In this document: piece by piece, positions 1-62,166 of the stretch
How the letters are laid out: each line of letters starts with the position of its first letter
Numbering within the stretch: position 1 is the stretch's first letter
NCBI RefSeq assembly: GCF_052425735.1
Contig: NC_135761.1
Span: 26,412,001 to 26,476,000 of the forward strand
Origin: Oculina patagonica
Taxonomy: Eukaryota
Direction: 5' to 3'
DNA: 64,000 nucleotides
Position numbers and translations under genes: made by a program
The notes under the pieces: generated by a model
What the model saw: the letters and a program-made list of their open reading frames with translations, nothing else
What the model was told of the DNA's origin: nothing
The model's database searches: none

Positions 1-1050
1 AGAGATAGGATCATAATAGGAATCCGAGAAAAAGTTACAAAGCTATGACTACTCAAAGAAGGTAGTTTGGATCTAGACAAGACGCTCAGTATTTGCAGAT
101 CGAATGAAGCAGTGACCAAACATCTCAATTTTATGATACAGCTGGAGCAAAGCCAAACAAACGAGCAAGTCAACGCCGTTGGCACTCAAGCAAAATAACC
201 AAATGGCAAATGGTGACCCGACAAGAAGCCTGACAAGAAAAAAAGATGCAAAAAACATGAAGAAGACTTGCAGCAGATGTAGGCGGACCAAAGAAACATA
301 AAAAAGAATGTTAAGCATATGGTCAAACATGTCTGGTGTGTTCGAAGTCAAATTACTTTGCATCTGTCTGTTTTCAGAAAAACGAAACAGCAGGAGAAAA
401 GACAGCACTGAAAGATCACAAAAGAGTACAGCAAGTTACAGAAACCAATAAATCCGAGGAGGAAGAGACCAATAGTGGAGAGTCGCTTTTTAAAGTGGAA
501 AAAGTCTCCAGTGTGAAGACATCAGGCAAGCAGTTCAACGCCAAGATAACCTTTTAAAACCAAGAAGAGTTAAACTTCACCGAGTTAAAATGTCAGTTAT
601 ACGCCGGTGCCACGTGCAATGTGATGGGGCTCTGTGACTTGGCAGTCATAAACCAAAAAAACGGGAAATCCCCCACTCAGAAGCAGTAAAGTGAAACTTT
701 GATTGTTCCCTCATGAAGCCTTATGGCATAGCCACCATGAAGATACACTTAAACAATACAACCAAAGAGTTAGTTTTCCAGATTGTAAACACCACAAAAA
801 TGCCTCTATCTGCCGAAACCTGTGGGAAACTGGGACTGCTAAAGCTTACCATCCCAGACACAGTACAAGTAAACAGCGTGGGTCCAGAGCCAGTAAAGTT
901 GAGCGCTCAGATGACCAAAGAGAAAATCGTGACAGAATACAAGAATGTGTTTAAAGGCCTTGGCCACATAGGATCCCAGCAGTTTTGTTATCGAACCAAA
1001 TAACCCCCCAGAGAAGACTGCACAGTTGGAGAAGAAAGAGATCATACAAA
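1..1050 (+). pseudogene. Gypsy LTR retrotransposon gag-protease fragment (frameshifted)
   Basis: RDRIIIGI..., Zn-knuckle-like C..C/SKSNYFASVC, protease-like CQLYAGATCNVM (degenerate DTGA), PLSAETCGKLGLL, EYKNVFKGLG; split across frames. Confidence 0.7.
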
Positions 1051-1082
1051 AGGAGGTCAAACCCACTGCCTGGTTTTATAGT

Positions 1083-1223
1083 ATTGCTGTTTTTCACTGC
1101 CACGCAAGTAACGATACTGTCACGCGCTGCAAATAATAAATCCAAAACTATTGAGTCAAAAATATCAAGAAAATTACTTCGTGTCCAAGTTTCAGGTCTG
1201 TACGGTATGCCGTACTCGAGTTA
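1083..1223 (+). mobile_element. Left-end fragment of the MITE family also present at 32884-33482
   Basis: attgctgtttttcactgccacgc...tccaagtttcaggtctgtacgg...tcgagtta resembles the start of the 32884 element. Confidence 0.6.
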
Positions 1224-1224
1224 T

Positions 1225-1560
1225 TGTGTGCTAAGTTCTCATTTGTGTTCGCTTTCTCAATTTATTTTTCACCCAGGTCTTGGGTGACCTCTTATGTTGC
1301 CTTGCATTGAGTACTTCTCCTGTCAAGGATTCGCCTTTAGCTACCTCAATAGTCTTCCTAGGTGTTCTCGTTAATAATACTACTGACAGCTTTTCAGAGC
1401 TTCACTCACACTTCGCATCTCTGCTCTCTGCGACACGCATTCATGACACGACTTGCACTCTTTGCTTGGCATTGTCTTTTGTCACCTCCTGTGTACGTCT
1501 GGCACACATTTTTATGTCGTGACTACTTTACACCCTGGACGGCAGCGTCTTTTTTTTGAG
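1225..1560 (+). pseudogene. DIRS-like RT/RNase H fragment
   Basis: LGDLLCCLALSTSPVKDSPLATSIVFLGVLVN resembles the DIRS RT thumb region; later LSFVTSCVR. Confidence 0.5.
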
Positions 1561-1592
1561 TAGGCTGCCTGAACTCTCCGCTTTTCAACTAA

Positions 1593-4500
1593 ATGGAGGA
1601 AAAATGTGAAGAAACACCGCGTTCTATTGGAGGGAAGCGGTGTGAAAGACCTAGTTGCAGCAGCTTGCCCGAAATACTGCCAAATAAATCCACAAAAACC
1701 TCCGAGTACTTGATGGCCGAACAAAACGATCTGGCAGGTATCTGGAGTGCGCTTAACAAAATTCAAAGAAATAAGGACGAGCTTCTCAAAGAGAATCAAG
1801 CACTCTGCGACTTATACAACGAGCTACAAAGGTCACTTGAATTCCATATCAGTAAAAGCTTAGAGGCGAACATCGAAGCTTTGAAGACTGAGGTGAACTC
1901 CCTCAAACAAGCAGTTCGAACAGTCGAAGACTAAATCGATGAACTATGTCAAAAAAATTAATGATCTCAGCAGCGATTTCGAAACCGCCATCAATCAAAT
2001 AGACGATTTGGAACAGTATACTAGAAAGCACAACCTTGAAATCCACGGCATCGCCGAGTCGCCGGAAGAAAACGTCGCTGAGAAAGTTATCAAGCTTGCC
2101 AAAGTGGTCAACGTTTAATTAATCTAATTTTGCGAAGAGTTTTGTGGGAGGGTGTTGAGCGTCTTGGCATAGCAACCGATGCTATTCAACTTTTCCCTCC
2201 TGGTGTCAGATGTAGCGTACTTTTATTTTTATTTACAATCCAGTCTCACCTAATGTTTTCCTTGGTTAATTGCAGTGTGCATACCATTCTTATAAACGCT
2301 CCTATTGCTAAGCTAAACGCTATCGTATTGCTGCAGAGTGTGGTACACGAATGTTTTATGGGAAAGAAATTTAAAAATCTAACCTACACATGGACTTAAA
2401 TGCAGTTTCCTTTAATGCAAGAGGCCTTAACAAATCCATCAAAAGAAGAAAGCTATTTTGGTGGCTCCATCTTAAAAAATTTGACGTTATTTTCCTTCAA
2501 GAGACATACAGCGACACTAGTTTGGAGGCTTTCTGGTGAGCTGAGTGGGGCAGTAAAATGTTTTTCGCGCACAGCTCGAAACATAGCAGAGGTGTTATGA
2601 TCCTTCTCAGACCCTCCATATGTAAAGAGGTGACTAATGTTACACGAGAAGACGAATTTTGCTTTGTTAATATTTACACCCCAAATAACCAAACCCAGCA
2701 AATTGCTGTCTTTAAAAAGATGACCGAATCAATCCGCGAATGCCAAACCGACAATTAATTAAACCAGAGGTAACACAGAAAAAGAAGAGGTCCTGGTTAC
2801 TGGAAGTTCAACAATTCTCTTCTGGAGAACGAAGAGTTTGTCACAAAAATAGCCTTACTATAAAACATCGCAGTGAGAAACACAAAGGTATTGCTGACAA
2901 AAGGCTTTACTGGGAAATGTTAAAAAGTGGAGATTCGGATGTTCGCTATCCGTTTTGCTAAAAGGAAAGCTAATGCAGAAAGAAACACCGAGCAAAACCT
3001 TTCTCAAAAATTGACGCTTCCCCACAAGACACTTCTCTTGTAAACGAGGCAAAGAAACTCAAAATCGAATTAGATGAAATCGCTGTGCAGAAAACCAAAG
3101 GCTCCATTATTTGGAGCAGAGCAAGATGGTACGAGATGGGTGAGAAATGTAACAAATACTTCTATAACCTAGAAAAAAGAAGTTATGAAAAACGACATAT
3201 CACCCGAGGGTATTACTGTTAAGGACCCAACGTCCATTCTAAGCGCCATTAAAAGCTTTTACAAGCAGCTTTATACATCTCAGAAACAGCTAGCACCTGC
3301 AGACTCATTATCTTTCTGTGAATATCAATCTCTACCTAGACTGGATGACGAGAAACAAAGCCTTTGCGAAGGTTTAATAACCGCAGAAGAATGCCTCGCC
3401 GCATTAAAAACTTTTCAACACAACAAGTCGCCAGGCAGAGTTCCAGAGTTCTACCTATGCTACTGGAAGGAGCTGTCGGGCCCTCTGATTGAATGTCTCA
3501 ATCATGGCGCCTTACTGGGAGAGCTTTCTATATCGCAGAGACGAGGAACTATTTCCCTGATCCCGAAAAAGAACAAGGATCCTTTACTGGCGCCCTCTCT
3601 CTCTCTTAAATACCGACTAAATGACAAAAATGTATTGCAAGGCGTTTAGAGAAGGTACTCCCTCTGTTAATTGAGCGGGACCAAACGGGGTACATTAAAG
3701 GCAGATTCATCGGTGAAAATATCCGTCTAATTACAGACATAATTGAACAACATGAGAATAAGGAAGGTTTGATACTCTTTCTAGATTTTGAAAAGGCCTT
3801 TTACTCCTTAGAGTGGGACTACCTTTTTAAGGTCCTCAACATTATGAACTTTGTGGTCCAAGTTTCCTTAAATGGATTCGCACATTATATAGCAATATTT
3901 CTAGTTACAAAGAGGAGTGAGACAAGGGTGTCCTCTTTCGGGAGTGCTTTTTATTCTCGCTTTAGAACCACTCGCACACCAAATAAGAATCACTGATTCC
4001 ATTCGAAAACGGGAATAAGATCACTAAACTTAGTTTGTATGCAGATGACACCACCGCTTTCATCCGCGACGACTCTTTTACCAGGTCTGAAAATTAATAG
4101 ATCAAAAACTGAGGGTCTGTGGCTAGGTCGTTGGAAAAGCAGATTAGGATAAAGACGAGCCTTTTGGCATTTCGTGGCCGAAAGAATATGTCACTGCACT
4201 TGGAATAAGTTTCCAAGTGAGAAACTTGCCAACATCTGGTGTAAAAGACATCTAACCATCTTAGGCAGAATAGCCATCGTAAAGAATTTAGCCAAACTTG
4301 TTTATTCTGCCGAATTCATAAAAGAGGTCAACAGCATCATCTTCTCCTTTATCTGGAATTTCAAACCTGATAAAATTGAGAGGAAAACGTTGATTGGCCC
4401 AGTCTGCAAAGGGGGTCTAAATATGAGTAACTTTGAAGATGTTGTAAAATCACTCAAGATTACCTGGGTTAATGGTTATTGCGAATCGGCCGGCAGTCAC

Positions 4501-5637
4501 TGGTGTGCCCGCCTTAAATCCTTATTAAGTTAAGTCAGAGGAGCTTTTCTACCACCTTTCTATAAAAATATTCTAAAGCTGTGGCGAGAATTAAATTACA
4601 AGGAACCGCTTAATGCAAATGAATTAAAACAAGAACTTTTATGGAACAACCGGTTTATAAGGACGAATGGTAAAACGATGTATTATAAAACATGGGTAAA
4701 TAAAGACATCTTAAAAATAAGTGATCTCCTCGACAATCACGACCAATTCCTCTTGTTCGAATATTTTAAAGCGAAAATTCAGCATTCAATGCACTTTTTC
4801 TTTGACTACGCCAGAGTTCTCGCGGCTATCCCTAAAGCGTGATAAAGAAAAATCACGTGTGGTGTTAGCGAACTCCCAAAAGTTGATTCAAATAGCGATG
4901 ATATTGTCTCTGCAAAAAAGCCCGTTTGATGCTTGCGGAAAGGTCCTTCTCTCCCCCTACCGCCAAAATCACTCTTAGAAATCAAGTAACAAACTTAAAG
5001 GATGTCTAAGAACTTCCATTTGGAATCACCGCTGCAAATAGATTAAGAAGCTTTCAGCATAAACTCATACACAACATCATACCTACCAATCTCTCACTCC
5101 ATAGAATGAAAATAAAAGAGTCACCACATTACGAACACTGCCACTGTCAAAATGAAACACTTCTCCATAGCTTTCGTACCACTGTTTAAGTAAAAGAGCC
5201 AGGTTAAGGTGCATTTTCTTTGTCTGTTATATTTATCCTTTTTCATTTTAGTTACATTAGATCTGTTGTTATAGTGAGTAGCTTCATTAGTTTAGTGACA
5301 ATTTCAGTATTTTTGTAAGTGCAGTTTAAGTTCTGTCAATTAGCTCTTGTGCCATGTATAGTTTTATAGTCTTTTAGTCTCTTTTGTATTTAAAAAATAT
5401 ATATTTTACTGTAAGTAGTTCAAATATGGTATTATAAGAACTATAAGTATCACATTGTAAGTAGTGTAAGTGTTGTAAATAGTATACAGTGTCGAATTGT
5501 AAGAAGCGCTAGTGTTGTATTGTATTGTGTACAGCTTAAGTATTTGTACAATAAGTAGTGAGTAGTGGACATACTTTTTTGTATTTTTGTAAGTGATGTG
5601 TTTTTTGTGTTTGCAATAAAAAGTAAAAAATAAAAAT
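1593..5637 (+). mobile_element. Decayed Tx1/L1-like non-LTR retrotransposon (ORF1-like 1593-2118; APE-RT ORF2 ~2390-5170; AT/GT-rich 3' UTR and A-tail)
   Basis: Coiled coil plus LEQYTRKHNLEIHGI; APE SFNARGLNKSIKR and DVIFLQETYS; RT NKSPG, ILFLDFEKAF, RGVRQGCPLS, YADD; AATAAA at 5615-5620 and A-rich tail. ORF1 may belong to a different LINE. Confidence 0.85.
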
Positions 5638-5929: not shown

Positions 5930-6210
5930 AACAGAACAGGATCGTAGGTTCATAGCTAAGGCCAGACAAATCGCTGCATCTTCGATGAAGCAGACTTTAT
6001 GGGGACGAGACAGACAGCGACAATGATGACCCTAGTCCTGGTTCTGGCACTCACGTCTTCCGCATACAGACCCGCCAGTCACCATACCTTGATATGTTCC
6101 ATGCACACCACCCAGTGCACATAACCATTGACAGTGGTGCCACAGGAAACATGATTCTTCACACTATCGTTCAATGCCTTGGCTGCCACGAGACACCCAG
6201 TTCTCAATCC
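5930..6210 (+). pseudogene. Gypsy aspartic protease fragment
   Basis: [31 protein letters not shown] (DSGA motif). Confidence 0.65.
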
Positions 6211-6539
6211 GTAGAAGATTACTGTTATCGTTGTATGGTCATTTGCTTCTCTTTGCAAGTTTTGTCGCATTGTTATGTTTCCTTTTTTTACAAAGTGTCA
6301 CCAATAAGAATAGTTTCTCCTCCGTAGTTTCGTTTTTACCCACCCTTGCCATTATGTAATTTATTTTTTCCTAGAATTATCACGCTGGTACGGGTCGTAT
6401 GTATGTTTGTACCTGTTCAGCAAATAACTTATCAAGAGCGTGAAATATACTAGTTGTGCCTGTAGTGTTCGCTGTGTTTTGGTTAGCGGCTACATATCAT
6501 TCTTATCGACTCTTTGACCTGTGTTTGTGGAGGACAACG

Positions 6540-7190
6540 TCAAGGATGGCTAAAAGAGACAAGATGTTGGACTTTATAAGATATTTGGCTTTATCTGATG
6601 AGGATCGGTCAGGATCAGCTCCGATTCCGCCTCTTCAGCCTAAGAAAGATTTCCCAAAGATAAACCCAAAGAAGTAGACGATGCCCCAGAGGAGCAAAGT
6701 ATTTCAAAGGTTCAGCAGGAAGCTTTGAAAAGACACGACAAGGCAGTACATCGTCTTATGGCCTCTGGTCTTGAGAAGATTGAGATGCCCAAAAGAGGGT
6801 TTCTTACTTTTGATGGTGACCCAAAGAGATGCCCTCAGTTTATTAAGAGTTTCAAGATAAACATGCAACGAGTAGAAAAGGACAGCGAAAAACTCTCTTA
6901 CCTAATACAGTACTGCAAGGGTGCTGCAAAGGATGCTATCGAGAACAGTTTGATGTTACCACCTGACGAAGGTTACAAAGAAGCAAAAGAGATCTTATGT
7001 AAGAACTTGGTTAGAAGCATACTGTGTTGAGAGCGTTCATCAACAAGGTTGTCAAAGGACCTCAGATTCGTGCCTGGGAGTCAGAGAAATTAAGTCAATT
7101 GGCTCGTGACATGACGAGCTGCGCCCTGAACTCAGAGCCCATGCATTACAAAGCGACATTAATTCTATGGACACGCTTAAGAGGATAGTT
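6540..7190 (+). pseudogene. BEL/Pao gag fragment (DUF1759-like)
   Basis: FDGDPKRCPQFIKSF...EKLSYLIQYCKGAAKDAIENSLMLPPDEGYKEAKEIL. Confidence 0.75.
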
Positions 7191-7949
7191 ACAATTGTCC
7201 ACTGTGAGGGTGTTTTGAGGGCTTATTTAGCATAGGGCCAGGATAAGTAGATGTAACGAAAATTAAAGTAAAATGAACAAAACATTATTTTAAAAAGTAC
7301 ATCGCCACCCCCACTCCACCCCATCTCAAATGCATGACACGACCAAATGTTTTCTCCGTGTCTTCTTTTTGTTCATACCCTCCCCCTTATACCATAAGGG
7401 GATACACGCGCTCTCACACAGCACTCACTCGTCCATGTAGAAGGGAAAGAAAACAATTTTGTCTAGTTAGACAATTTGCACAATTCGCAAGATCGTCTCC
7501 CCCCACAGGAGTCGATTACCCTGACTATATAGTACACATATTGGCAGTTCCTCTTTTTCTCAATCCTTGTAGCTTTGCTTGCAATGGTTGCCACCAATGA
7601 CAAATCAACTGACCTGGCTGCTGACAAAAGAACGCCCAAGTGCCTGGGCTACAAACTGCCTCATAATGTACACTTATTCAGTGACTCTGGACCTTGCCTG
7701 TTGACAATAGCACTTCAGGCCTAGACACCTCGACTTAACAGTCAAATGGAGGAGAAAACAAAAAATCCTTCAAATTGATACATCAGATGCCACTGGACGC
7801 TTTGATCGCAGGACAACAAACAAAACAAAATGGCGGTTTCCCTTTCCTGGACATGGGCTGCGGGCTCGGCGGCAAACCTGACTGCTCAGATGAACCTTGT
7901 TGGACCATTGACGGGACCTTTGGCAGCGCAAGAGTCCATCTGCTGACTC

Positions 7950-8720
7950 TCTATGGCCTCTCCCCTCAACAAAAATCTTTGGCTGACAGAACGTTTTGGC
8001 AACACGGATCAAGCATTCCTTTCTGATGGCATTTGCAATGGCTTTAAGTTGGCTCCAGTAGATTGCAATTTCGTACCAGAGCGTCAGGGAAGTATAAGTC
8101 AGCAACTTGTGCAGAGCAAAAAATAGCAGTTGAGGAAACTATCTTGGATGAGATTGCAGAGGGCAACTACGTTATCACTGATGTTAAACCTACTATTGTC
8201 AGTGCATTAGGAGCTATTCCTACACCTAATTCCTTTAGAAGTGTGCCTAATTCACGACTGCTCCCGTCCTGTGGGTGGGCACTTAATGACTTAATGACAA
8301 AGTTGCAAACTTTGGAAATAGTAATGCTTTGGATGATGCAATAAAATTGCTAAGGCCAACATATTTCATGGCAAAAATCGATCTGAGGCATACATACAGA
8401 TCGGTTCGCAATCACAAAAGTAACTTTTTAGCAACAGGCTTGCCATGGCAGTGTTCAGGGCAACCTAATTCCACTTATTTCTTCTACACTCAGCTTCCTT
8501 TTTGTGCCAAAAGCTCACCTGAAATTATTCACCGTCTGACACAGTCTGTGCGGCTCATGGTCAGTCATGGCTTCCAGGCAGTTGTTGTCTACCTAGATGA
8601 CTTTCTCATCATAGGAAAGTCCAAGGAAGAATGTCAAGAATCTTTCTCAGTACTTTTAAAGCTGCTCTAGGACCTGCACTTTCAAATCAGCTGGCGCAAG
8701 GTCATTGGCACAACACAGAA
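7950..8720 (+). pseudogene. DIRS/Ngaro-type reverse transcriptase fragment
   Basis: KPTIVSALGAIP, LIHDCSRP, FMAKIDLRHTYRSV, LPFCAKSSPEI, VVYLDDFLIIG. Confidence 0.8.
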
Positions 8721-10149
8721 GCTTTACAAGTCTAATTGGGCCTGTTGCTTAAAGGAGTAGTGTTAGGCCGTTTATATGGAGGAGAGTTGTCCATGGTAGG
8801 AGGGTTACCCTCTCCCCCGAGCCACTTTTTGTCGACTTAATACGAGAAACGTTGTCGGAGTTGTCAGTGCTGACCGAGCCAAAACTTGGTTTTTTGGTTA
8901 AAAAGACTGGCAAGAATTTTTTGAAACATCTTATATGGTGGCCACCAAAACACAACCAAACACTTAACAATAACTGCTTACAACCCTTCACTAAAGTAAT
9001 GCTGTTTTTAGATTAGTATTCCGGTATTCTAGCGTTCCAGCAGTCCTGAGCTTCATTACAGTGGCCAATATGGCGGATGTAAGGAAGATGTCCAAGATTA
9101 TATTAGCGATACCTTTATCATCAAACCTTTTATTGGCATTATCATGCCCAAGCCAAATTCTTTTGTACCATCTGTTGCAGCTGAATAACCAACAAGAATT
9201 TTTAATGGCAGAGCTTGCAGCAAGGGAAAATGATTTTGTTTGTAAAGCCAGGCAAAAGCAGCATAAAATCTGTGTGGAAAACATGTATTGGCTTTTCTTG
9301 TATTAGAACCTTCACATTTCATTTCTGCAGATAATTTGTGTTAAAAATATTTCTTAAGATCAAGATATATATAATAAATACACTGATCAGTACACAGGTG
9401 GATGGCTTGAACAATAAACGTGAATTCATGAAAGTGTAATTTCTTGCTGTAGGATCAAATTATCAGATGAACTATAAGTGGTAAGAACTTTTCAAAGACA
9501 ATGATACTAACAAAAAACCTATACATTGTACAAACTCAGAACAAAATAGAGATTATCAAATGAATTTACTCAATTTACAGTATCTATTATACTGTATAAT
9601 GCAGGTCCGCTCAGTGGAGTGTTGGCACAGATACACACCAAACAATGCAAATCTTTTGTAGCCAAAGCCGAGCCAAAAGCCACGCCCAGTACATCCTATT
9701 CTCAGTTGGAGCCTCCTTGTACCTTGGCAGTCAGTGTTGATGGAGTGAGAATTCCTGGCACTCCTGTACCAACAATAGAAGGCGTCTGGTCTACAATTGT
9801 AATTGTTGCAGTGACAATTGTTTCAAAATCAGATGTTATAACTCAATATTACACCTCGCTGAAGTAATTTTCTCTGGACATACTTTTAGTTTTTAAAATA
9901 AAAACGGCAGTGTTCTGTTCTTTGATGCCTCGCTACCAATAGAGTCAGACAAATACATCTATTGCAGCCAGTATTCATCGTTGATCACAACGAGGAGGCA
10001 CATACTGTAAATAAAATGCTCTTTGAGTGTTAAAACCCATTCTACCAAGTGCCATCTAACTAAAGTGATCCTCCAATGCATGTCAATTGTGACATTGATC
10101 ATCATTCATTCGCTCTGAACCCTCAACGTTAGATAAAGCCCTGTCTGAA

Positions 10150-10690
10150 GCTTTGGAACTTGAAGCTTTAGAACTTAGAGCTGTTAGAATGAGAGAAAGT
10201 GTTGTGAATGAAGTATCAACCATTGGGAAAGGAATTTACCAAGAGCAAAACCTTCCTCTACCGCGCTGGGTCCCAGAGCTTTCAACTATGATTGCATCGG
10301 CTATAGCAAAAGCGGCAGCCAAAGCAGTGGCTAATGCTATCCCTTCAAGTAGTGTTCAAGGGAACTATAGGCCTTCCTAGTTCAGACCAGCGAATGGCAT
10401 GGGTAGAAGGTGTTGGTCATGTGGGTCTATGTATCAATTTCAGAGGAACTGCCCGCAGGAAAACTTCCGCAGGGCGGGGGACAAATCGTAAACATGAGTC
10501 GCTCCCTGCCTGAAGACCAAGTACCAGTGTTGGGCATTAGCTCTATCCAACCTAATGTGTTGCTGCTGCGTTGTCACAAGTTCAAGACAGCGAGGAGCGT
10601 CCAATTGCATATGCTGCTAAGGCCCTGACAAAATCACAAAAAAAATGGGCACCAACCAAGATTGAGATGTATGCGCTAGTGTTCGCCCAA
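10150..10690 (+). pseudogene. Gypsy gag zinc knuckle and RNase H fragments
   Basis: CWSCGSMYQFQRNCP knuckle (~10405-10455); SQVQDSEERPIAYAAKALTKSQKKWAPTKIEMYALVFA. Confidence 0.7.
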
Positions 10691-12570
10691 GCCATGCAGC
10701 GTCTACAAGGGCTGCTGAAGATGTTCACCAGGAAACCTAAAATGAAGGCAGAATATCTGGAGTTTATGGGCAAGGTAATTGAGAAGGGCCACGCCCTTTC
10801 GGTCCCACGTGATGATGACCAGCCTCCCCCTGGACGTTCCTGGTACTTGCTGCACTTTGTGACATACCATAACACCAAGCACACCATCCGCGTTGTGTTT
10901 GATTCGTCAAACAAATGCTCTTACCTGTCCCTGACCCGATGAACAACCTCATTGGTGTTCTAATGCGCTTTCCCAAGGAGAAGGTTGAAGTAATGTGCGA
11001 CGTAGAACAAATGTTCTATTCATTCCACGTGGACCCAGCACACAGAGACTTCCTTTGTTTCCTGTGGTTCGAAGGAAATGACCCATTGAAGCCCATCACA
11101 CAATATCGTATGAACGTTCACCTGTTTGGCAACGGTTTGAGCCCCGCAGTTGCCATGTATGGACTTCGCAGAACAGGGGTAGATGGTGAGGAGGAGTATG
11201 GCGAGGAGGCCAAGAATTTCATATACCGCAATTTCTATGTCGATGTTGATTTGGCTTTGCTGCCGACCGCCCAAAGGGCAGCCACTGCTAAGCTACAACT
11301 TTACAAAGTCGTCTCAAATTCAGTGAAAGTCATGGAAGCCTTCCCCGTCAAAGATCGAGCAAAAGATTGTGTGACCTCTACCTGCGCAATGATAGCCTGC
11401 CAGCGCAATGGTTGCTCTGAGTTTTCTGGGACTTGGAGTCAGACGCCTTCACCTTCAAGGCGTCTTTGCCAGAGAAACCATTCACCAGGAGAGGAGTCTT
11501 GTCTATCGTCAACTCTGTGTATGACCTGCTTGGTTTCATGGTACCTTTCATGCTTGAAGGGAGTCAGGATGCTATTGTAACTGAAGTTTATCTCTGCCAG
11601 TTCAACGAAGCAAATGAGATGTCCACATCTCTTGTCTACGGCCAAGCCAAAGTAGCCCCTGTAAAACCTACAAGCATTCCACGACTGGAATTGTGGGAGC
11701 AGTGTTAGCAGTTCAGAGGGTTGTCAAAGAAAGTGACATCACGATCTCCGAAGTGATATACTACACTGATTCGAAAGTGATGCTAGGCTACATCGCGAAC
11801 AAAAGCTATCGATTCTATGTCTATGTGGCCAACCGAGCCATGCTAAGCTTCTGAGGTGCGACCGAGGTACCAACTTTATTGGAGCCAAAATGGAGCTTGG
11901 GAAAGCAGCGTTCGAGCTTAACGAGGAGAAATTGGAGAAATTTGTGACAGATTACGGGTGCAAATGGGAGTTCAACCCTCCCCACGCATCACATTTTAGC
12001 AGTGTGTGGGAGAGGCAAATCAACACCATTCGACGTGTACTAGATGCCATGTTCACTGAACTAGGCAAAACCCAGCTAACACACGAGCTGCTAGTCACAC
12101 TTATGGCAGAAGTGGTAGCCATCGTTAACGCCAGGCCGATATCTGCGTTGCCGTCCGACCCAGATGACCCACAGCCGCTGTCTCCAGTGATGTTACTCAC
12201 CATGAAAACGCACCCAGCTGGACCCTCTCCAGGTCAGTTCCTATCCCCTGACATTGAAAGGGGTCAACGCAGAGCAGTTCTGGATGAGATGGCAATGGGA
12301 GTACCTTCAGAGCCTGCAGCCCCGACAGAAGTGGACAGAGACCCAGCGAGACCTGAGTGTTGGAGATTTCATCCTTGTGTGAGACGAGTTGCAGCACTGC
12401 AATGACTGGCCTCGAGGACGAGTCACTGAAGGAATAAGAAGCGAAGACGGCAGAGTGAGAAAAGCTAAGGTAGAAATTATCAAGGACGGAGAGAAGAAGG
12501 CCTACCTGCATGCTATTAAGGAGCTTATCGTGTTACTGACCGAGGACGGAGCAGATGACCTAAACTAATA
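10690..12570 (+). pseudogene. BEL/Pao pol (RT, RNase H/peptidase A17, integrase), internally deleted
   Basis: WYLLHF...IRVVFDSS, CDVEQMF, NFYVDVD, TRRGVLS, KPTSIPRLEL, WEFNPPHASHFSSVWERQI, AIVNARP. Confidence 0.9.
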
Positions 12571-12633
12571 CCAGACAAAACTCAAGGACAAACTGTACCT
12601 ATTTAGCAAGGATAAGTATCCTTGGGCGAGGAG

Positions 12634-13199
12634 TGTTATGATTGTTCAAAGAAAAGGATATCGTTTGTTGACATTTCATGATTTAATAATTACAGCTTTA
12701 TTTAGATTTCCCATCATTTTTTGACATTTTATTGTTAGTGTATTTAATCATTAATCGGAGCGTTTTGTACCATGTGATTTAGCTATCAATCTAGTTTAAA
12801 AGCCTGTCACTTACATTACCTACACAGTCATCAGAGTATTTGAGTGGAGTATCGAAGTCGTCGGAGTCAATTGGGAGTTTATTTGGAGTTTATACCGGAG
12901 TTACCTCTTTTGGAGTTTATTCGTTTACCTTTTTTACACAGGATCAGACGTGAGTTACCATTGTACATATTTATCACCTTTTTTGCTTTTTCTGATTTCT
13001 ATTTTTCCTTGTAATTCCTTTAGCCTTGTTTATGATTACACAATCGTAAATTGCTTTGTAGTTTTCACCGCATGTGTGCATAGTTAGAATAAAGTTTGTG
13101 GTTTTGTATTCTACACTGTGGTTGACACTTACCGTTCCCGAAAGTACATGGGAACGCGACACGACATCTAAACTACTTTTTAGCGTTTCATTGGTTACA
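12634..13199 (+). repeat. Probable 3' LTR of the BEL element
   Basis: Purine tract gggcgaggag directly before TGTTA at 12634; AATAAA ~13088; ends ...ttaca; right boundary approximate. Confidence 0.6.
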
Positions 13200-13879
13200 A
13201 GCATTTATTGGGCACCAGAAATTTTTACTTTGTCTAGGCATGTTACTGGTACACTGTAGATTTAACTCTATGTACTCGGGCTGGATTGCATTTTATAATA
13301 GCAGTTAGCTTTTGCAACATTGGCATCAAGTGTTTACGATTGTTTTCTTTGCAACATTGGCATCAAACATTTACAATTGGCATTTTCTATATACTTACAA
13401 TATGGCTGCAAAGAACGTACTGGGCTGAGCTTCAAGGACCAAGTTCAAAAATTTTTGTTATCTATCTGGGACAAATATCAAAAAGCGGGGGTTTTTTTTT
13501 TTAAGCCTTTTGGCTTCGGGGGCCGTTGTGGCGGGCGAGGCAACCATGCTGATGCAGATTGCGTAAAGGAAGATCAGCTGGATGAAGAAAAAGCCCTGGA
13601 GGAACAGTTTAAAAAGCTGACAGTGGCAGAGCAGGGGATCGCGAAGGCCAATCGTATCAAACAGCATAAATTGGCCATCGCTGAGCCAGAAAGAGATAAT
13701 AGATCTCAAACAAAAACGACTGCTGTCCTCCCAACAGACCAAGATTTCGCTGGCAAAAACTTTACCACCAACTATACCAGTGCTCTCATCGTTATCACAA
13801 GCTGCCGCATCAGAATCAGGCACAACCGTGCCTGTTTACTTGTCACTTTCGACTGTCAGTACAATGACAAGTTTCTCAC

Positions 13880-20090: not shown

Positions 20091-20108
20091 TATGTTCATT
20101 GCGAATGA

Positions 20109-40776: not shown

Positions 40777-40921
40777 GTAAGCTTCATATTGATCTGTTTT
40801 TGAGCATTTTCCTGTTCGGTTTGGATGAGTTATGTCTGTTTTTGTCCTGCAAATTTGTTATCTCAGCGTTGGTCGATATGGCTAGATTTTTTCGAAAATC
40901 TTGGATTTAGGAGCAGCAATT

Positions 40922-52850: not shown

Positions 52851-55800
52851 ATGAGCAGCGACGTAGACAGTGATCGGGAGCATTTATTTCAAATACTGAC
52901 TGCGCGTTCAACCGCGACCGAGGACGAGGTTTTTGAATTCTCGCGGGCTTTGGAGGAAAAATATGCCGATAAGAAGCAGTTCTTTCGCACTTTGCCGCTC
53001 CGCAGCCATGTTGGCTTGCCAACAGATCAGATGGCCATGTCACTGGTGCCAGAAGATCTTCCTCTGGAAGCAGAAATAGTAGCGACAAGAACATCTCCTG
53101 ATGGAAACTGCCTTTTTAATGCTGTGTCGTTAGCTTTGGTGGGTGACGAAACACAAATGAGTCTTCTGCGTTTGCTTGTGGCTGTTGAGCTCCTCCTGAA
53201 CTCTGAATTCTACATACAGCACCCAAGATTAACTTCGTTTTCCTCGGCCAATCGTCAAGAAGACAAGCTATTTTCCCTTTCCCTGACTAGAGATAGTGAT
53301 TCGGTTTATTTCAACACCAACAAGAGCAACACCAAAATTGCAACAGGATGCAATTTGGTCGGAAGCTCTGGTTGCAACTAAATGTAATGAGTGGAGTGTT
53401 TTTTTTCACATTGCTGCGCTATCGACGGTTCTTGCCAGGCCTATCTTCTCTGTATATCCAAATTGTCAAACTTGGATACGGGACTTTTTGCACGCTGAAA
53501 TAGGTCCACAGGAGATTCAGAACATGGTACCCCTTGAAACGCTCTTTGTGTTGTGGTCTAGGGACGGGAACCTAGATAACAGAAGCGGAGCTTGGTATTC
53601 TCCAAATCATTTTGTTCCGTTATATTCTGCCAGTAAGGGCGGTATTTCTAGTGCTAAAGAGAACGAAAGTCAGCCTGAAAAGCATCAGCAACAAGAAACT
53701 GTAACAGTTGAACCAGCCAAACCAAAAAAGAGACCCGTAACCTTGGATGGCTACTTTGGCTTACCAAGTTCTAAGCGAAAGAAAGAGAAAGAGCCAAATT
53801 CTGCTAGCATTGCTGATGAAGAGAGCCGAAAGCCCGTAAAGAAGAATGATCTCCCAACCACACCCAGCGTCCAGCCACAAAAGCAACAAACAAAGCTACC
53901 ACGTGAACAGAAACCCACAAAAATAGGGCCCCAATGGGTCCATGTGTTTTGCTGCTAGAGCAAAGTCTTAGGGAACATGTTGATGAAAGACAAGTGAGTC
54001 GAGATTGAAATCCAACGTCTTTTATTGTCTGTCACTTGTGTGCAGGTTAATAATTGCACTATATTGTAGTCACTTTGTGTTAATTCAATCCTGATAATTT
54101 TACTGATCAATGTTATGTTGAAATCAAAGACAGCAAACATAATTTAATTACTAGTAAGTTAACGTAATGTCTGACATGATTGTCTCTTTGATAAAAAACA
54201 GTAACTCTTAACATTATAAAAAAATCTCAATGAACTCAATGTGATTCTTTTAGTGGCGTTATCTCACGGGTTACCGTTAGTTGTATTTGGAATCATTGTC
54301 ACAATGGTAGCGTTTTAACAACAACGAAAAAGACAGAATCTATTGACCTTATAAGAACTCAATGTGATATATTTATTAGTGACAAGACAGTGGTTCTTTA
54401 ACCACTTTCACCCAAATTAAACACTGGAACAACTAACTCTTAACAAACTTGTTGTGTCACCCTGAGTTAAATATGCAAAATTCAGAAATTATAAATAATC
54501 GCACGCGCACCGGCGTACAACAACAGAAAGACGGCGTTGAACGTAACGCAAAGTTCATTTTGAAAGCGAAAGTTTACAAATAATTATTATCATTCGTCAG
54601 TCATCCCTTCACGCATGAACACTCGTCGAATTTCAGTGTCTTCACAACAAGATCGGAAGATCGATAAGGACCAATTTTTGATTCTGCGAAAGTTCGTTTT
54701 CTTAAAGTTTTAGAAATTTGTGAAGTTGGAGGATTCACTGAGGACTGCGTAGCCGAAGATGCAGTGGCTCGCTGGACATCAAATTCTATTTTTCACGGCG
54801 TTTAATTAATCTTCACAAAATAAACATGTTGCGCCAGCGCGTCTGGCAGTCAAAAATTCATTTTTCAAAAAACTTTCCCTTTCCAGCTATTTTAGCGGGG
54901 CTTATACTATAGTACCTACCTGTCAGTCGTAGAAAAGCTGAAATTTAAGGATGAACTGTTTATTAAATGAAGACCGTATTATTTTTTAATAACTAGTAAA
55001 CAAACTGGTCGCCACGCATTTAAACACGAACTGACGAATGTTGCATCTGATGCAGTGAATCTGGTGAATGAGAACTTCCTTTAATATTTCTTTGTTTTCG
55101 ACGGTGTGCACCACTGAATAAGTTTCTTTCCCATTGTGATGTTACTAGTATTAATTCGTTTCTAGCTGTCTTTTATATAGCTCGAATACAGCTACAATTA
55201 GCGGTGCAGCCTACCAGCATGGTATATTCCTTTCCAGCTGTCTTTGCGTGACAAGTTACACGTTCATACATTTTATTTTAAAATATGAAGTTCAGAGTTA
55301 ATACAGTACTAGTATGCTGTAGACAGTGTAGACAAGGTGAGGGTAAGTTTATTTTCAAAGCGAAAGTTTACAAACTGTGCACTAACCGGTCCTTTGGAGA
55401 AAATATTTATGACCTTCGGCGAGGTTCCAAGTCTTCACTCTTTTCGTAAATGATGAAAACTGCAGAATAATTTTCTCATAAAACTGGAGTGGTCGCGCCA
55501 CAGTTTGTTTTCTTTCCCAATGCGATATGCTTTTAAATCGGTTTTCTGTTTTCCAACGTGTCCAACGTGGTTTGCGTTCGAATACTTTGGCCCGTAACTT
55601 CGAATGCGATCAGCGCTACGGTTCATTGGTTTCGATTTTGTTTGTTCATGGATTTGATTGACATCGGTAGTTCAGATTTCTCCTCTGTTACGGCACTTAC
55701 ACCTTACGGCACTTACACCTTACACCTTACGGCACAAACTTCAGCTCTCAATGTGTTTTGCTTGCAGCCATTGCGGCTGCAGCAAAACACAAAAAGCTGT

Positions 55801-57144
55801 GAAAGACCTGATGACAGCAAACAAGAAAAAGACGAACAAAAGCGGCGATTTATTCCCAAATGGAAAGATGAATTCCCTTGGCTACATTTCAATGATGATA
55901 AATACGTGATGACATGCGACATATGCTGTAAACATTCAAGCGTAGCTGGTAAAACAGATTTTTTGAAAGGCTGTACTAGTTTCAAAAAAGACACACTCAA
56001 AAAACATGCTACTAGCTATGGGCACATCCGCGCCAGAGAGAAGTCCTTTGCAGAGGAAAAAACAATTGAGGAAAGTCAGATCTTCAAAACTTTCTCAAAG
56101 ATAAACAAAGACATACAGGCTCAAGACCGCAAAGAAATGGAAATAAAGCTAAACACTGCATATTTTGTTGCGAAAGAGGAACAACCCTTTTCTAATTTTG
56201 AAGGGTTGCTTTCGCTTCAGAAAAAAATGGACTAAACGTTAACCTTACGTACGCAAACGAGAAAAGTTGCGCGGGATTGGTTTCGTTTTTGTCTGAAGGC
56301 CTTAAAGAAGACCTCATCCAAGAGCTAAACTCAAAAAACTTTTTCAGCATAATGGCGGATGGAAGTGCTGATTTCAGTGGTGTGGAGAACGAAACCATAG
56401 TTTGCCGTTTTGTAAGAGATGGGCTTCCTGTCAACTGCATGCTATGACACAAAGCTGTTGCACATGCCCATGCTGAGGGTACGTTTCTATAATAACTGCC
56501 TAAGCATTTTAATGCATTTTCCATTTCTATTTTACCATGGTCTAAACCATTCGATTTTGTGATAATAATCATGAATGCATATGAAACTATAAGAAACCAA
56601 CTACGTTCGCACTAACATCATTCCTGTTCTATTAAATAAAACTTCATAATAGATGTAATCAAATGAAAACAGGACTCTAAAAGTACTCAATAAACCCCGT
56701 TTTCTGTTCCTCTCTTCTATTGATCGTTTTAGGTGTAAAGGAAGCCATAGTAAGCGCGTTAGAAGACGTCACTGACTGGGAAGATCGCTGAAGATCGCTG
56801 TCAACGCTCAGTTCCGTGACAAGGACTACTGCAGCTTATGGAGAATGTTGCTCTCCAAAGATCCATATAAAACTGATCTCAAAGACATCCTTCATCTTGT
56901 TGAGATTCTCCTTGTCCTGCCCATATCGGCTGCTGGCTGTGAAAGAATGGTCTCTGCACAGAACAGGATCAAAAGTAGCCTCCGAGCGTCTTTGAAGACC
57001 CCAACGCTAGAAGGATTAATTCGAATCTCAGCTCAAGGTCCATCACTAGATAACTTCGACCCAGCTCCTTCAGTTAACCGCTGGTTTACACGAGACAGAT
57101 CTAAAGGCGAAAGAAAGCGACGACCAAACTTTTCCCGCACCTAG
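52851..57144 (+). pseudogene. OTU (vertnin-like) protease-hAT transposase fusion, disrupted
   Basis: PDGNCLFNAVS...PNHFVPL; RFIPKWKDEFPWL...CDICCKH zinc finger; FFSIMADGSAD; intron ~56479-56732; deletion at repeated aagatcgctg; LPISAAGCERMVS dimerisation region. Confidence 0.85.
53922..55792 (-). mobile_element. Non-autonomous Helentron-type (HINE/DINE-1-like) element
   Basis: Subterminal IR tgtgttttgctgc (53943-53955) / gcagcaaaacaca (55779-55791); hairpins at 55752-55791 and 53926-53941; short repeat array 55691-55735; inserted in an A-run without TSD. Confidence 0.75.
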
Positions 57145-58707
57145 AAGTGAACATCATCACCCCTTCATTTCCAGCTTCAAATCATAGATCGTAAGATTGC
57201 AAAATGTGACGTTTAAAGACCTTGCAATGACTTGTATTGTTCACAAAGTACCTGGAAACGGATTTGCGCTCTGACATTTGGAATCTGAAATTATGTTGAG
57301 AAATGTTGTTTAGAAATGGGTCACAAGTATGCACTATTAAAGTTGCTAGGTTCCCTTAAACTTCGTGAAATTCAGAGTTTCAGTTGACAGAAATTGCAAT
57401 TAGTGTTGTTACTAAGGTATCATTATGTGTAGTCCATGCAATGCTCGAACATCAAGTCTGTTTAGCAATGGCTTTGAAATAAAATAGGATTACATGTAAA
57501 ATAGCTCAGATAACTCGGGTAGATACACATTGTACGTTTGAAACAATGCTGTAACAAACAAGAAAGACGTAACTTGCTACTGTTTTGTTATGTAGTTGAA
57601 GTCGGGTAACTAAGGTTCCACTGCGTTTGAATAGTTTATGATTATAAAAGAGGTTGGGACATGTCTTGTTTTTCCAGCAATGATGATAGGTTAACATGAT
57701 GTAGTCTAGTGTGCTTTTTCGTGACGTTTACATTAGAAGTAATAGTTAGCAGACTTGTCAACTTTTTCTAAAATTGTTTGAAAGATTTTTTGTAAGTGAG
57801 GACATTCTGGGATATGGTTGATATTACAGTGCACATGACGATGTAATTTACAGGAGTCCGAGATAAGTGGTCATCTGATCATGATCATCAAATTCGATGG
57901 TCTGTGAGGGAAAAACAGAATAAATCTTACAAATGACAAACTTGCTATAAAAGTTTGGAAGTGTTTAATCCTATCTGTTTGTTAACAACATAACCAGAAA
58001 ATTTTGTTGTATGGAGATCTGAACAAAAACGTTCAATTAAGTTAATAGTGTCACTCCACTTCGATTCAAAGCTACAAAAACCCCTCAATTTGACACTATT
58101 GTATAATGTGTTTTTTTTTTCACCCATCCTTTAAAAAAAAATTGGCTCCTAACTTTTTGGACTTGGGGACCACTTTGGAAAATTTAGGAGCCAGAGGGCT
58201 CCTTGAAAAAAAAGTTAATTTCGTGCCCTGTAATGGCACTGAAAGGTCATTGTCAAAGGTTCTTTAATGTTGTTTCCACACTACTTCAAAGTGTTAATCC
58301 AATTGTTTGGACAATAGGATATGTTGTACCATGCCACACTGAGTTCTTGTATAAGAAGTATAAAGTTGGTTTAGGCATTAATAGCATGCAAGGCCGAGAA
58401 GCTAAGCATGTAAGATTACAACAATATGCCAAGCATGCTAGTCTTGCAACAAGATGGGAGGTTGTTCTAAAGCATGATTTTGTTTCAAATGTTTGGCTTT
58501 GAAGGGCAGACCCACATCACTTTGGCTACACCAAATGTACTGACCAATACATCCCAGCATGTGTCAACAATGACACTTGCTGCTTTTGTGGGTATCCAAA
58601 GGAAACTGATAAAGATAAGTGCAAGATGTGTTCCTCTTATATCTACAGAGAGGTCACTATTACAGCAGGTTTGGGAGAGCTGTCTGAAGGTTTGAAAATG
58701 CTCTTAA

Positions 58708-61240
58708 CCCTTTCACACCTGAACCGGCCAAAACCGGCCGACCGGAAACTGCGCTGCTATTCCTGAACCGGCCAAAACCGGCCGAAAAAAAGTCATTGAT
58801 TTGACCTTCCCACCCCTCCCCCAATAAAGTACATTGGCTCACCAGCTTTCAGTCTATTGTTTTTAAGTTATTGACCAATCAAATTATAGTTACTGCGCAT
58901 AACAAAGACCTCCCGAGTATGAGAGAGAGGGATGCAAATTTTGTGCGCAAACATGGCGACAGTCACGAAAGGTTTCTGTAAAGGAACCTTTTGTGCATTG
59001 TCGTTCGTGAGCGGGGAAACCACTTAGTTTATTATCAACTTGGAGATGATAAAGCAAAGAAACTTCCTTTGTGGCAGGAATTTGCTTTATCATCTCCAAA
59101 TTGACAACAACCTAAGTGGAAAATGGCAACGCGAGTAAATCCTTTAAATGTTAGTTCTGAAGAATTCAGGGCGATTTTCGGGGATTCTGATGAAGAAGAC
59201 ACCGGTAATATTGATGAAGATAGTTCTGATATAGATTTCGAAGGTATTGATGAAGATGGTGAGGAAAGCGATGAAGAAATTGACAACGAAGGAGCCGCCG
59301 AAAACGACCACGAAGAGTCACGACAACAATGGACGGCTAACCTCAGCAACATCGCTGCTGGCGAATTTACTGCACGATCGGAAATCGTCGTAGACGTTGG
59401 AGACGAGCCTAAAGCTGATGATTTTTTTAGCTTGATGTTTGGCGAAGATCTTTTTGACAAAATCGTGTTAGAGACAAACTGCTACGCTCGCCAAAAATTA
59501 GCCGACAACCAACAACGTCTTGCTAAATGGCGCAACATCACGAAACCTGAATTGAAAGCTTACTTCGGAATTTGTGACCTAACACGGGAAAACGTACACT
59601 AACGATTTTCCGTTTAACCGCTAGAAGCGTTTATTATCCGTTTATCATTCGTTTAAACGATTCATAAAAATCGTTTAAACGGTAAGGCCATCCGTTTATC
59701 TGGTGTCCTTAACTGTTTAAACGGTTAACACTATCTTTTACATGCCGTTTAAACGATAAGGCCATCCGTCCATTTCGTATCCTAAACCATTTAAACAGTA
59801 AATGCTGTGTTTACTTTATTTCACCGTTTATCAGCGTTTATCGATGTTCACAAACGGCAAACTACGGTACGGAACAAGCACAAATAAAATGGGGTACGCT
59901 TGTTTCTAAAATCGACTTCGTTTCATAATTATTTATACCGTACAAGCTTTAATAAATTCAACACGCGTGGAATAAAATGAACTGTGACATTTCGAAGCTT
60001 GTGATAAACATTTATTTTATCCATCTCACTTACCAGTAAAGCGCAACTTTTTTTGGTAAACTTTTTCGGTAAAATACATTCTCATGTCATCTCCAGTTGA
60101 AGGTCTTGATTTAAAACAGTGAAGTGATTCGAAATAATCGAAACAAGTCGAGAAAATACGGTAGCTTTCATCATTCACAATATCGAAAGTGAAAGCCACT
60201 TTTCCATTCTCACGTGCAAAGACGAGACGAGACGGCGGCGAATCACGCTTGGCTTCTTGACCTTTCATCGCCAAGAATGTCACGGTTTCCTAGAAATTTC
60301 TGTTCACGCAATTGAATGGTATTATTACACAGTAAACGTCTTGATCTTTAATGTTTCTTTCAACTTTTTCACACTGAATGTTTCAGAATTAAAAAAACAA
60401 TTCATTTTCGGAGTTGTTTTCTGGCAAACCGCATGTCTGGGACGGCGGGACAGGAGAAGCCGACATTTGCATAATCACAAGTTTGTCGGCGTTTTAAAGA
60501 ATGTCGCCCGAAAGATATCAAATTCCCCGCGAATACATGTCATTGATTTCTCAATCTTCTGTAGAACTTTTATTCGATCCCAAGTTAAGAAACAAACTTT
60601 TGATTCGTTAGCTTTTCGTGAAAACTTTTTTTTACCGCAAACTCGCCGGTTTAAATTGTCACGTTCGATCTCCTGTGTAAATAAAAAACTTGCCGTTGTT
60701 TAATTTTTGCTGCATGCAAATACCTAAATGCAGAGTTCGCTTGCAGTCCGCTTATTCTGTTAAATTGCTCTTTGAGATGTAGGTAACAGTTAAATTTCAA
60801 CTTGGAATAGTATGTGTGAACGAGCTTTTAGACAATTTTTTTCCGTCGCCAAAATTTCTGTCTGACACGCAACTAATTATCTCGCGTTCGGCCATTCAAA
60901 CTTTTGCAAATTTTATCTAAATACTTTCAGTTTTGTCTGCCGCTTTGAAGATCTTTTTCATCCTTGCCATTAGAATGGCTTTCGTTTAAATGTTTTGCAC
61001 TACCATTTAAAAACTTTCGGCTTGAGTTTAAATGTTTTGCTTTGCCGTTTAAGCGCTTTCGGCATCCTTTTGAATGTTTTATTTTCGCTTAAACGCTTTC
61101 GGCTTCCGCTTAAATGTTTTGCCTTACTGTTTAAACGCTTATGACAAGCGTTTAATTATTATGCTTGTCCGTTTAAATGGTTTAGAAGCCGTTTACTATC
61201 CGTTTACTATCCGTCCGTTTTTATCCGTTTCGCGGATTTT

Positions 61241-61277
<37 letters not shown>

Positions 61278-62166
61278 GTCATCATGGGGTTGAATATTCT
61301 TCCAAAAGTCGCCGACTACTGGTCGTCCGCCATTTTTATGGGCAATGAAGGAATAAAGCGAGTGATGCCGAAAAACAGGTTCGAAGAAATAAGCCAATAT
61401 TTGCATCTCAATGATACGAGTCGGGAACCGGCGCGTGGAGACGCAAATTTTGACAGACTTTACAAATGCCGCCCTGCTTTGACCGCCGTTGTGAGAAATG
61501 TTCAGCGCTGTTATTCGCCAACAAAAAACATTTCCATTGACGAGGGAATGATAGCGTTTAAGGGCAGACTTTCATTTCGGCAATATTTACCGGCTAAGCC
61601 AACGAAATACGGTATAAAAGTGTGGATGGCGGCCGATGCTTCGAATGGTTTTGTCATCAATTTTTCTGTTTACCTAGGAAGCGACGGGCAAATTCGAAGG
61701 CGCCACGGCCTTGGATATGATGTCGTTATGGATATGGCACGTCCCTTTCTCAGAAGAAAACATCACGTTTTCTTCGACAATTTCTTTTCAAGCCCTGTTC
61801 TTTTAGAACATTTGCTTGACCAGCAAACATACGCGTGTTCAACAGTAAGATGCACACGCAAAGATCTGCCACCATGTGCTAAGAATAAACTTCGCCAGCC
61901 AGGGCAAACGATCACGCGACAGAGAGGTAGCCTTCTTTTTACTAAGTGGCACGACAAGCGAGACGTGGCATTTTTATCGACAAATGTTTCGCCAGAAGAG
62001 CCTACCCGTACGGTTCAACGTAAAAAGAACGGAAGAAACATCGAGATTCAAAAGCCGCGTGTCTCAGATGTTTACACGGCAAATATGGGAGGAGTTGATC
62101 GAGCCGATCAATTTCGTTCGTATTATACCGTAGGAAGGCAGTCACGAAAGTGGTATAGATATATCA
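58708..62166 (+). mobile_element. piggyBac element, 3' end deleted; PGBD4-like transposase 59123-59573 joined to 61276-~62166
   Basis: TTAA|CCCTT at 58704-58712; subterminal repeat cctgaaccggccaaaaccggccg x2; acidic N-terminus; ISIDEGM, FFDNFF, GGVDRADQ; similarity ends after RKWYRYI and no right TIR is seen. Confidence 0.9.
59574..61271. mobile_element. Non-autonomous TIR element with 4-bp ATTT TSD (Sola1-like)
   Basis: 32-bp TIR gtgacct(a/c)acacgggaaaacgtacactaacga; ATTT at 59570-59573 and 61272-61275; many cgtttaaacg subterminal repeats. Confidence 0.85.

Follow-up and report, generated by a model that had tools for sequence, protein, structure and literature searches.

The window, the whole 64-kb stretch of Oculina patagonica DNA analysed here, is filled with remnants of transposable elements (TEs) of unrelated classes, and every one that could be oriented in positions 1-62166 lies on the plus strand. 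This multi-class orientation is real and beyond chance. The best reading, which we hold tentatively, takes the region for a long transcription unit of the flamenco type on the minus strand; it ranks just above an unannotated host gene or read-through, which is nearly as likely. According to the favoured reading, the window would form the central part of a transposon graveyard that spans ~110-150 kb, is free of genes, has a long history of germline methylation and has probably been transcribed as a single long minus-strand unit, in which insertions of any class would persist only if they are antisense to the minus-strand transcript. Such a unit would most likely be a uni-strand locus of the flamenco type for a piRNA or long non-coding precursor, one that traps new insertions. 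Judged from DNA sequence, the region is a candidate piRNA locus with a well-documented structure and a putative function.

Strand bias was measured in four ways, by the lengths of stop-to-stop open reading frames (ORFs), by Pfam searches of ORFs of at least 75 aa, by tblastn and by self-blastn, using the window and two 100-kb flanks (264 kb together), while co-orientation was scored in 1-62166. Independent elements were delimited by grouping ORFs according to the boundaries of their copies in the genome. The sequence-only reading of this DNA had claimed an extreme plus-strand orientation of unrelated TE remnants, which holds by all four measures, and had proposed a strand tally with a binomial-type test. 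A tally of independent orientable elements gives about 15:0 on the plus strand in 1-62166 (p ~6e-5); the ~28 orientable pieces counted earlier could not be reproduced. The co-oriented classes are LINE, BEL/Pao, hAT-like, piggyBac and a TIR element, old and young alike, with about 78% to 100% identity to copies elsewhere. The block contains six or seven DNA transposons, every one on the plus strand, and since their insertion mechanism offers no reason for an orientation preference, selection is suggested.

TE domains or multi-copy repeats were found all along the window (1-64 kb). Among window ORFs of at least 75 aa, TE Pfam domains occur in ~13 of 111 on the plus strand vs 0 of 88 on the minus strand (Fisher p = 6.5e-4), namely RVT_1 (four times), RT_RNaseH, Peptidase_A17, zf-RVT, hAT-type domains (three), DDE_Tnp_1_7 (two) and a weak OTU match. 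Stop-to-stop ORFs of at least 60 aa are evenly split (164 plus, 166 minus), and the plus to minus ratio rises to 55:33 at 100 aa or more, 19:1 at 150 aa or more and 12:1 at 200 aa or more. A base-composition artefact in ORF length is rejected, as stop-codon density is the same on both strands and the null, a dinucleotide-preserving simulation, leans slightly to the minus strand, with 0.5 (plus) and 1.4 (minus) ORFs of at least 150 aa expected. When all non-host ORFs of at least 150 aa were searched by tblastn against the 264 kb, 52 HSPs fell on the plus strand vs four on the minus strand, all four from a single Penelope fragment at +163 kb. Within the window, self-blastn detected no internal duplication of at least 200 bp, so head-to-tail copying through tandem or segmental duplication does not explain the pattern.

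Chance combined with ascertainment, by which the most one-sided among thousands of windows would have been picked out, is very unlikely to account for this pattern. The genome does amount to ~8,300 windows of 64 kb, and at the probability of 15:0 about half a window of this kind would be expected, if all windows had 15 orientable elements; moreover, among the best 150 RVT_1 hits genome-wide, the pairs less than 200 kb apart comprise one on the same strand vs five on opposite strands (by eye, in a tiny sample). However, the one-way run reaches 20:0 (p ~2e-6) when the tally is widened to the upstream flank, from -73 kb to +62 kb (135 kb), and the block overlaps an independent feature, the CpG-depleted domain described below.

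From left to right, and all on the plus strand, the block begins with an old, internally deleted LINE copy at 1536-5636 (RVT_1 at 3625-3993 by Pfam), which is collinear with ~5.5-kb copies elsewhere at 83-91% identity and has a homologue in the LINE at -39 kb. A reverse-transcriptase (RT) fragment follows at 7530-8724 (RVT_1 at 8290-8667 by Pfam); its other copies are 75-87% identical and an RT ORF at -72.8 kb is 48-51% identical. The BEL/Pao LTR-retrotransposon remnant at 10556-13907, with RT, RNase H, Pao peptidase and integrase-like parts (RT_RNaseH, Peptidase_A17), matches by tblastn a full BEL at 119-125 kb and a BEL at -18 kb, and a second, distinct BEL RT fragment lies at 15487-15991 (tblastn E = 1e-18). 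Next comes a hAT-like transposase remnant with trailing ORFs at 16572-19585, recognised by tblastn, of which 16572-17096 shows 38% identity to the 528-aa hAT-like ORF of the young element at 42400-44900 (E = 1e-25) and is followed by plus-strand ORFs of 146-211 aa. Further remnants are a BEL-like RT with downstream ORFs (20763-22700; tblastn 28% over 284 aa, E = 2e-17), an RT fragment (24882-25382; RVT_1 in two neighbouring ORFs and a tblastn match) and a hAT element (34910-36541; Dimer_Tnp_hAT at 36173-36541, tblastn match at 34910-35092).

The youngest insertions cluster at 42-62 kb, toward one side of the block. A young hAT-like element at 42400-44900 retains intact ORFs of 528 and 247 aa (zf-C17orf113, DUF4371) and has a copy on contig C3 at 99% identity, and a young repeat with no assigned family at 46638-48390 has a 97% identical copy on C6 and an intact 321-aa ORF with zero Pfam or PDB matches. 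They are followed by a very young 5'-truncated LINE at 48986-50577 (zf-RVT; many copies at 99-100% identity) and by a large young element, provisionally delimited at 50745-58707, in which a 445-aa ORF is present and Pfam recognises zf-C17orf113 and, weakly, OTU. The large element is interrupted at 53914-55800 by a nested 1.9-kb insertion for which dozens of 100% identical copies exist, and the segments 52437-53923 and 56789-58234 of the large element match single copies elsewhere at 98-99%. A young TIR element (59568-61276; 191-aa ORF, 99% identical copies, 33-bp inverted ends) and a piggyBac transposase (61266-62192; DDE_Tnp_1_7, E = 1e-73) end the series. Just beyond it, the sole supported minus-strand repeat ORF of the window (226 aa, 62809-63486) is the right-hand limit of the strictly one-way block. 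This ORF has zero Pfam matches and no meaningful Atlas match, and a fragment 91% identical to part of it sits on the plus strand at 45715-45891.

Even the very young copies, at 99-100% identity, share the orientation of the block, as would be expected if the bias were set at insertion and not by selection, through replication-fork coupling or family-specific oriented targeting. Such an origin is unlikely, given that the elements employ at least five unrelated integration mechanisms and that a shared target sequence or array is absent. Known replication-linked orientation biases are, in addition, weak.

Several family names given earlier to pieces of the block (Gypsy, DIRS, Tx1, L2, Penelope, pogo, RAG1-like) did not reappear in our searches. 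Pfam found no Gypsy or env domain in the window, and the 445-aa ORF has no RAG1 match among solved structures. The CR1, SINE and HINE pieces previously placed on the minus strand were not recovered either, and their orientation could not be assigned; tRNA and Rfam scans for orienting SINEs gave zero hits. PDB sequence and Atlas searches of the unexplained ORFs were uninformative.

The polarised TE block coincides with a CpG-depleted domain (o/e 0.4-0.7) that has its limits near -15 kb and +90 kb and includes positions 1-55000 of the window (CpG o/e 0.41-0.78). In the flanks past -45 kb and +100 kb the ratio is 0.9-1.25, and it is close to 1.0 for the adjacent genes and the sequence around them. 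In cnidarians, CpG loss is a mark of germline-transcribed, methylated units, and with CpG o/e as an indirect proxy the domain is probably germline-methylated, of the gene-body type. Neither strand of the window (1-64 kb) contains a host domain in ORFs of at least 75 aa (Pfam; 0/88 on the minus strand). The 264 kb hold five host genes, two Maf, one cadherin and two C1q/TNF, and because all five are on the minus strand, an explanation by host transcription is nearly as good as a flamenco-type unit. In this explanation, which we consider possible and well short of probable, the graveyard lies within a minus-strand host unit, as a very long intron, a UTR or the read-through of an unannotated gene, and sense insertions are purged for their terminators and splice sites; at a very large population size the purge could be near-complete. 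It is favoured by the typical CpG depletion of methylated gene bodies, it predicts a near-absence of small RNAs, as in the libraries reported below, and an antisense excess among TEs in introns is well documented (PMC3517506, PMC1794541, PMC3088655). The TEs of the block resemble such intronic TEs in running opposite to local host transcription, with nearby host genes all on the minus strand, and in their gene-body-like CpG loss; they differ in that no enclosing gene was found. Intronic antisense bias is also partial, at roughly 60-80% in mammals, and is weak in the case of DNA transposons, whereas here it is complete and includes DNA transposons.

The giant intron of a minus-strand gene that the sequence-only reading had offered as an alternative fails for the adjacent cadherin gene and may hold for an unannotated one. 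Comparison with Desmophyllum pertusum and an ENA coral assembly places the polarised block at a synteny break: the minus-strand cadherin gene terminates near +92-95 kb in agreement with both corals, and in the relative a convergent NLR-type gene comes after it, which excludes the window as a cadherin intron. Each Maf gene is compact and made of a single ORF, and exons of one minus-strand gene were not found on both sides of the block, though small exons of an unannotated gene may lie there. Further against a host unit, the polyadenylation hexamer AATAAA is not depleted on the minus strand, being equally frequent on both strands, and an intron longer than 100 kb would be highly unusual in a coral.

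In its layout the region agrees with a uni-strand cluster transcribed from the minus strand, being gene-free and CpG-depleted, with all TE classes co-oriented and the young insertions toward one side. Such a cluster was proposed from the letters alone, but small-RNA mapping was nearly blank: three size-fractionated libraries (6-7 million reads, tissue unspecified), mapped without a positive control to the 6 kb of unique sequence at 6001-12000, gave 5, 0 and 0 reads. All five reads are on the minus strand, and they count for a flamenco-type locus together with the multi-class purity, the overlap with CpG depletion, the lack of a host domain on the minus strand and the fly and Nematostella precedents cited below. 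On the other side stand the near-absent small RNA, the restriction of the fly bias to Gypsy retroviruses, the failure to find a promoter or transcription start for the minus-strand unit, the AATAAA symmetry, the five host genes on the minus strand and the low TE density of the coral piRNA clusters predicted so far (PMC13343488). X1 contigs were rejected as transcription evidence, as they are short low-depth patches from a 100-Mb run that resemble reduced-representation DNA; their loose ends, considered as splice junctions, map nowhere in the 264 kb.

That the minus strand is transcribed, that orientation is under selection and that any piRNAs are made are inferences from this arrangement, and the polarity may also be kept without piRNAs, by an orientation-dependent purge in long methylated non-coding transcription units. 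If such graveyards do produce piRNAs, the strand bias of TEs could by itself serve to locate transposon-defence loci in corals and other non-model animals, and the flamenco principle would extend to cnidarians and to every TE class. It is conceivable, if doubtful, that Oculina patagonica has many flamenco-type one-strand traps that take every TE class antisense; the architecture would then be a general and probably ancestral animal solution and not a fly speciality. If the graveyards are not piRNA sources, an orientation bias that is complete, involves many classes and extends beyond 100 kb needs a different explanation, which would itself be valuable.

In Drosophila, scans for TE strand bias have recovered validated flam-like clusters (PMC10643416). 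Like flamenco and these clusters, the Oculina block is gene-poor, ~100 kb or more in length, made of TE remnants nearly all antisense to the presumed transcript, has its younger insertions gathered in one part and lies at a site of synteny change. Cluster strand bias in flies is confined to env-bearing Gypsy retroviruses and does not involve every class (PMC10643416), whereas here it spans LINE, BEL/Pao, hAT-like, piggyBac and TIR elements. The block also belongs to a different phylum, and it is known from TE orientation, unlike flamenco, which is known from piRNAs, a promoter and a transcript. The clusters of Nematostella (PMC5731801) and the proTRAC clusters of reef corals (PMC13343488) were likewise set by small-RNA mapping, and the latter are low in TE density, in contrast to the TE-dense Oculina block. 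Nematostella belongs to the phylum of Oculina, and sources on one strand predominate in it, with 402 of 457 piRNA clusters uni-stranded (PMC5731801), at an estimated density, with genome size assumed, of about one cluster per 0.5 Mb.

Open reading frames (ORFs) of at least 60 aa, taken stop to stop, are almost evenly divided between the strands of the window (164 on plus, 166 on minus), and the plus-to-minus ratio grows with length, from 55:33 at 100 aa to 19:1 at 150 aa and 12:1 at 200 aa. Stop-codon density is equal on both strands, and 30 dinucleotide-preserving simulations gave 0.5 plus-strand and 1.4 minus-strand ORFs of at least 150 aa, so base composition, if it favors either strand, favors minus. 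When every window ORF of at least 75 aa was compared with Pfam, transposon (TE) domains were found in about 13 of 111 plus-strand ORFs (four RVT_1, three hAT-type, two DDE_Tnp_1_7 (piggyBac), RT_RNaseH, Pao peptidase, zf-RVT, and a weak OTU) and in none of the 88 minus-strand ORFs (Fisher p = 6.5e-4). The analysis was extended to 100 kb upstream and 100 kb downstream of the window (264 kb, from an assembly of 529 Mb), and when all its non-host ORFs of at least 150 aa were compared with it by local tblastn (E up to 1e-4), 52 HSPs fell on plus and four on minus, all four from a single Penelope fragment at +163 kb. Every copy of the families that are multi-copy in the region lies on plus, namely LINE (-39 kb, 1.5-5.6 kb, and 49-50.6 kb), BEL (-18, -0.4, 10.6, 15.5, 20.7, and 119-125 kb), and hAT-like elements (16.5, 35, and 42.5 kb).

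Self-blastn revealed no duplication within the window. Copy boundaries and ages were taken from whole-genome searches with 9- to 10-kb window pieces; the left 40 kb contains old fragments (78-92% identity to the closest copy), and six young insertions, one nested inside another, lie at 42-62 kb with 97-100% identity to other copies. Two of these (48986-50577 and 53914-55800) match dozens of copies across the genome at 99-100% identity, and because of this their families appear to be active now or to have been so very recently. Grouped by copy boundaries, the ORFs in 1-62166 come from about 15 independent elements that can be oriented, every one of them on plus (two-sided p ~6e-5). The upstream flank adds five further plus-strand elements, an RT (-72.8 kb), a LINE (-40 to -36.7 kb), a BEL (-18.8 to -17 kb), an RNase H (-10.5 kb), and a BEL RT (-0.4 kb), which brings the run to 20:0 across 135 kb (p ~2e-6); chance combined with ascertainment is a very improbable source of such a run. 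The extreme co-orientation of unrelated TE fragments claimed in the sequence-only reading is thus borne out by the ORF split, Pfam, and tblastn, and the observation is solid and more extensive than was stated there. Its count of about 28 orientable pieces was not recovered, nor were its labels Gypsy, DIRS, Tx1, L2, Penelope, pogo, and RAG1-like for window pieces or its minus-strand CR1, SINE, and HINE calls (scans for tRNAs and with Rfam gave no hits). The 445-aa ORF that had been called RAG1-like (51129-52463, plus) has no RAG1 match among solved structures by sequence; its sole match there is a weak one to a designed repeat protein.

In the flanks, the long ORFs on minus belong to host genes rather than TEs, namely two bZIP_Maf genes (at -65.4 and -63.0 kb), a cadherin gene with an 836-aa exon (97.8-100.3 kb), and two C1q/TNF genes (114.8-116.7 and 139.1-141.0 kb). 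Each of the five host genes identified in the 264 kb is thus on minus, and nearly all TEs are on plus. The Maf genes (flank piece L004:4644-7538, about -65.4 to -62.5 kb) are small, stand in tandem, and are kept in a relative; one Maf protein, 62 kb upstream of the window, matches ACROYT_G013655 of Oculina patagonica at 100% identity. The cadherin gene is compact (about 95,200-101,000; flank piece L014:3173-6975 and nearby), its single exon encoding seven cadherin repeats, with orthologues in other corals (758-886 aa, 75-84% identical) and a gene model spanning 6.5 kb in Desmophyllum pertusum. A C1q/TNF-domain gene precedes it in a conserved order, which a more closely related coral (ENA assembly ERZ25067872) shares. 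Similarity to that assembly reaches from 116.8 to 92.5 kb and no further; in the relative, a HEPN-NB-ARC-TPR gene follows on the opposite strand 6.5 kb past the cadherin ORF, and no counterpart of it was found in the 264 kb. Because of this break and the opposite-strand gene, the cadherin gene must end near 92-95 kb without enclosing the window, which rules out the window as its intron. The earlier suggestion of a giant intron of a minus-strand gene therefore fails for this neighbor, and survives in that an unannotated gene with small exons may surround the window. At the upstream end, the match to the relative's Maf locus stops at -57.5 kb, and the relative carries this locus and the cadherin on different contigs. 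Because similarity ends at both points, the 150-kb gene-free, TE-filled domain (-57.5 to +92.5 kb) lies, as judged from this assembly, where synteny is broken between two conserved gene neighborhoods.

In cnidarians, CpG loss is a sign of germline-methylated DNA, chiefly the bodies of transcribed units. CpG o/e is 0.9-1.0 from -100 to -45 kb, 0.4-0.7 from about -15 to +55 kb and again at 65-90 kb, near 1 across the youngest insertions (55-65 kb), and 1.0-1.25 past 100 kb. For this reason the domain looks like a long-methylated, probably transcribed one, unlike the adjoining cadherin and Maf genes. Throughout the domain, the polyadenylation signals AATAAA and ATTAAA occur as often on minus as on plus, with no sign that they are avoided on minus.

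Because the bias is complete, spans several classes and ages, and arose without duplication, it would call for orientation-dependent selection relative to a minus-strand transcript; a bias arising at the insertion stage is improbable. Purging of sense insertions is documented for host transcription units (PMC3517506; PMC1794541; PMC3088655), and such purging within a unit on minus would fit here nearly as well as the piRNA-type reading that we favor. Uni-strand piRNA clusters predominate in Nematostella (PMC5731801), and a search based on TE strand bias identified flam-like clusters, since validated or validated there, across Drosophila (PMC10643416); published coral piRNA clusters are reported to be TE-poor (PMC13343488). 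The locus is a further example of this known layout, and we tentatively regard it as a possible flamenco-type uni-strand precursor locus of putative piRNA function. Unlike fly flamenco, where Gypsy elements alone carry the bias, the Oculina locus has a multi-class bias and has so far yielded no piRNAs (three libraries, 6001-12000).

These ncRNA libraries were size-fractionated, carried the same species label, and contained 6-7 million reads each. The nearest scored genomic copies of 6001-12000 are at most 87% identical, so reads at least 95% identical should be local. A major piRNA cluster should yield hundreds to thousands of reads; the libraries, of unspecified tissue and without a positive control, gave 5, 0, and 0, all five on minus. 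The counts lend no support to piRNA output, yet for those two reasons are not a refutation. Contigs of sequencing run X1 give short, low-depth patches of coverage that resemble reduced-representation DNA, and the loose ends of these contigs match nowhere in the 264 kb.

The first supported repeat ORF on minus is 62809-63486, matched at 91% identity by a plus-strand fragment at 45.7 kb. Beyond the downstream end TE orientation is mixed, still mainly plus, with plus-strand fragments at 64.8, 109, 111, and 128 kb, a full BEL at 119-125 kb, the minus-strand Penelope at 163 kb, and a Penelope palindrome (101,395-103,884; L014:5395-7884), a 2.5-kb, 99.9% inverted repeat with Penelope-type GIY-YIG ORFs of 332 aa on each strand. 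Upstream, a tandem array (about -22.2 to -21.3 kb; flank piece L008:7788-8734) shows staggered self-matches (250-790 bp, about 90% identical) and contains long ORFs on minus (180 and 228 aa) whose Pfam matches are all spurious. Across the 264 kb, the one-way pattern is most clearly broken by a 5.6-kb repeat whose two copies, 95-97% identical, face opposite ways, one at -30.7 to -25.1 kb (L007:9272-L008:4903) and the other at 134.2 to 138.8 kb (flank piece L018).
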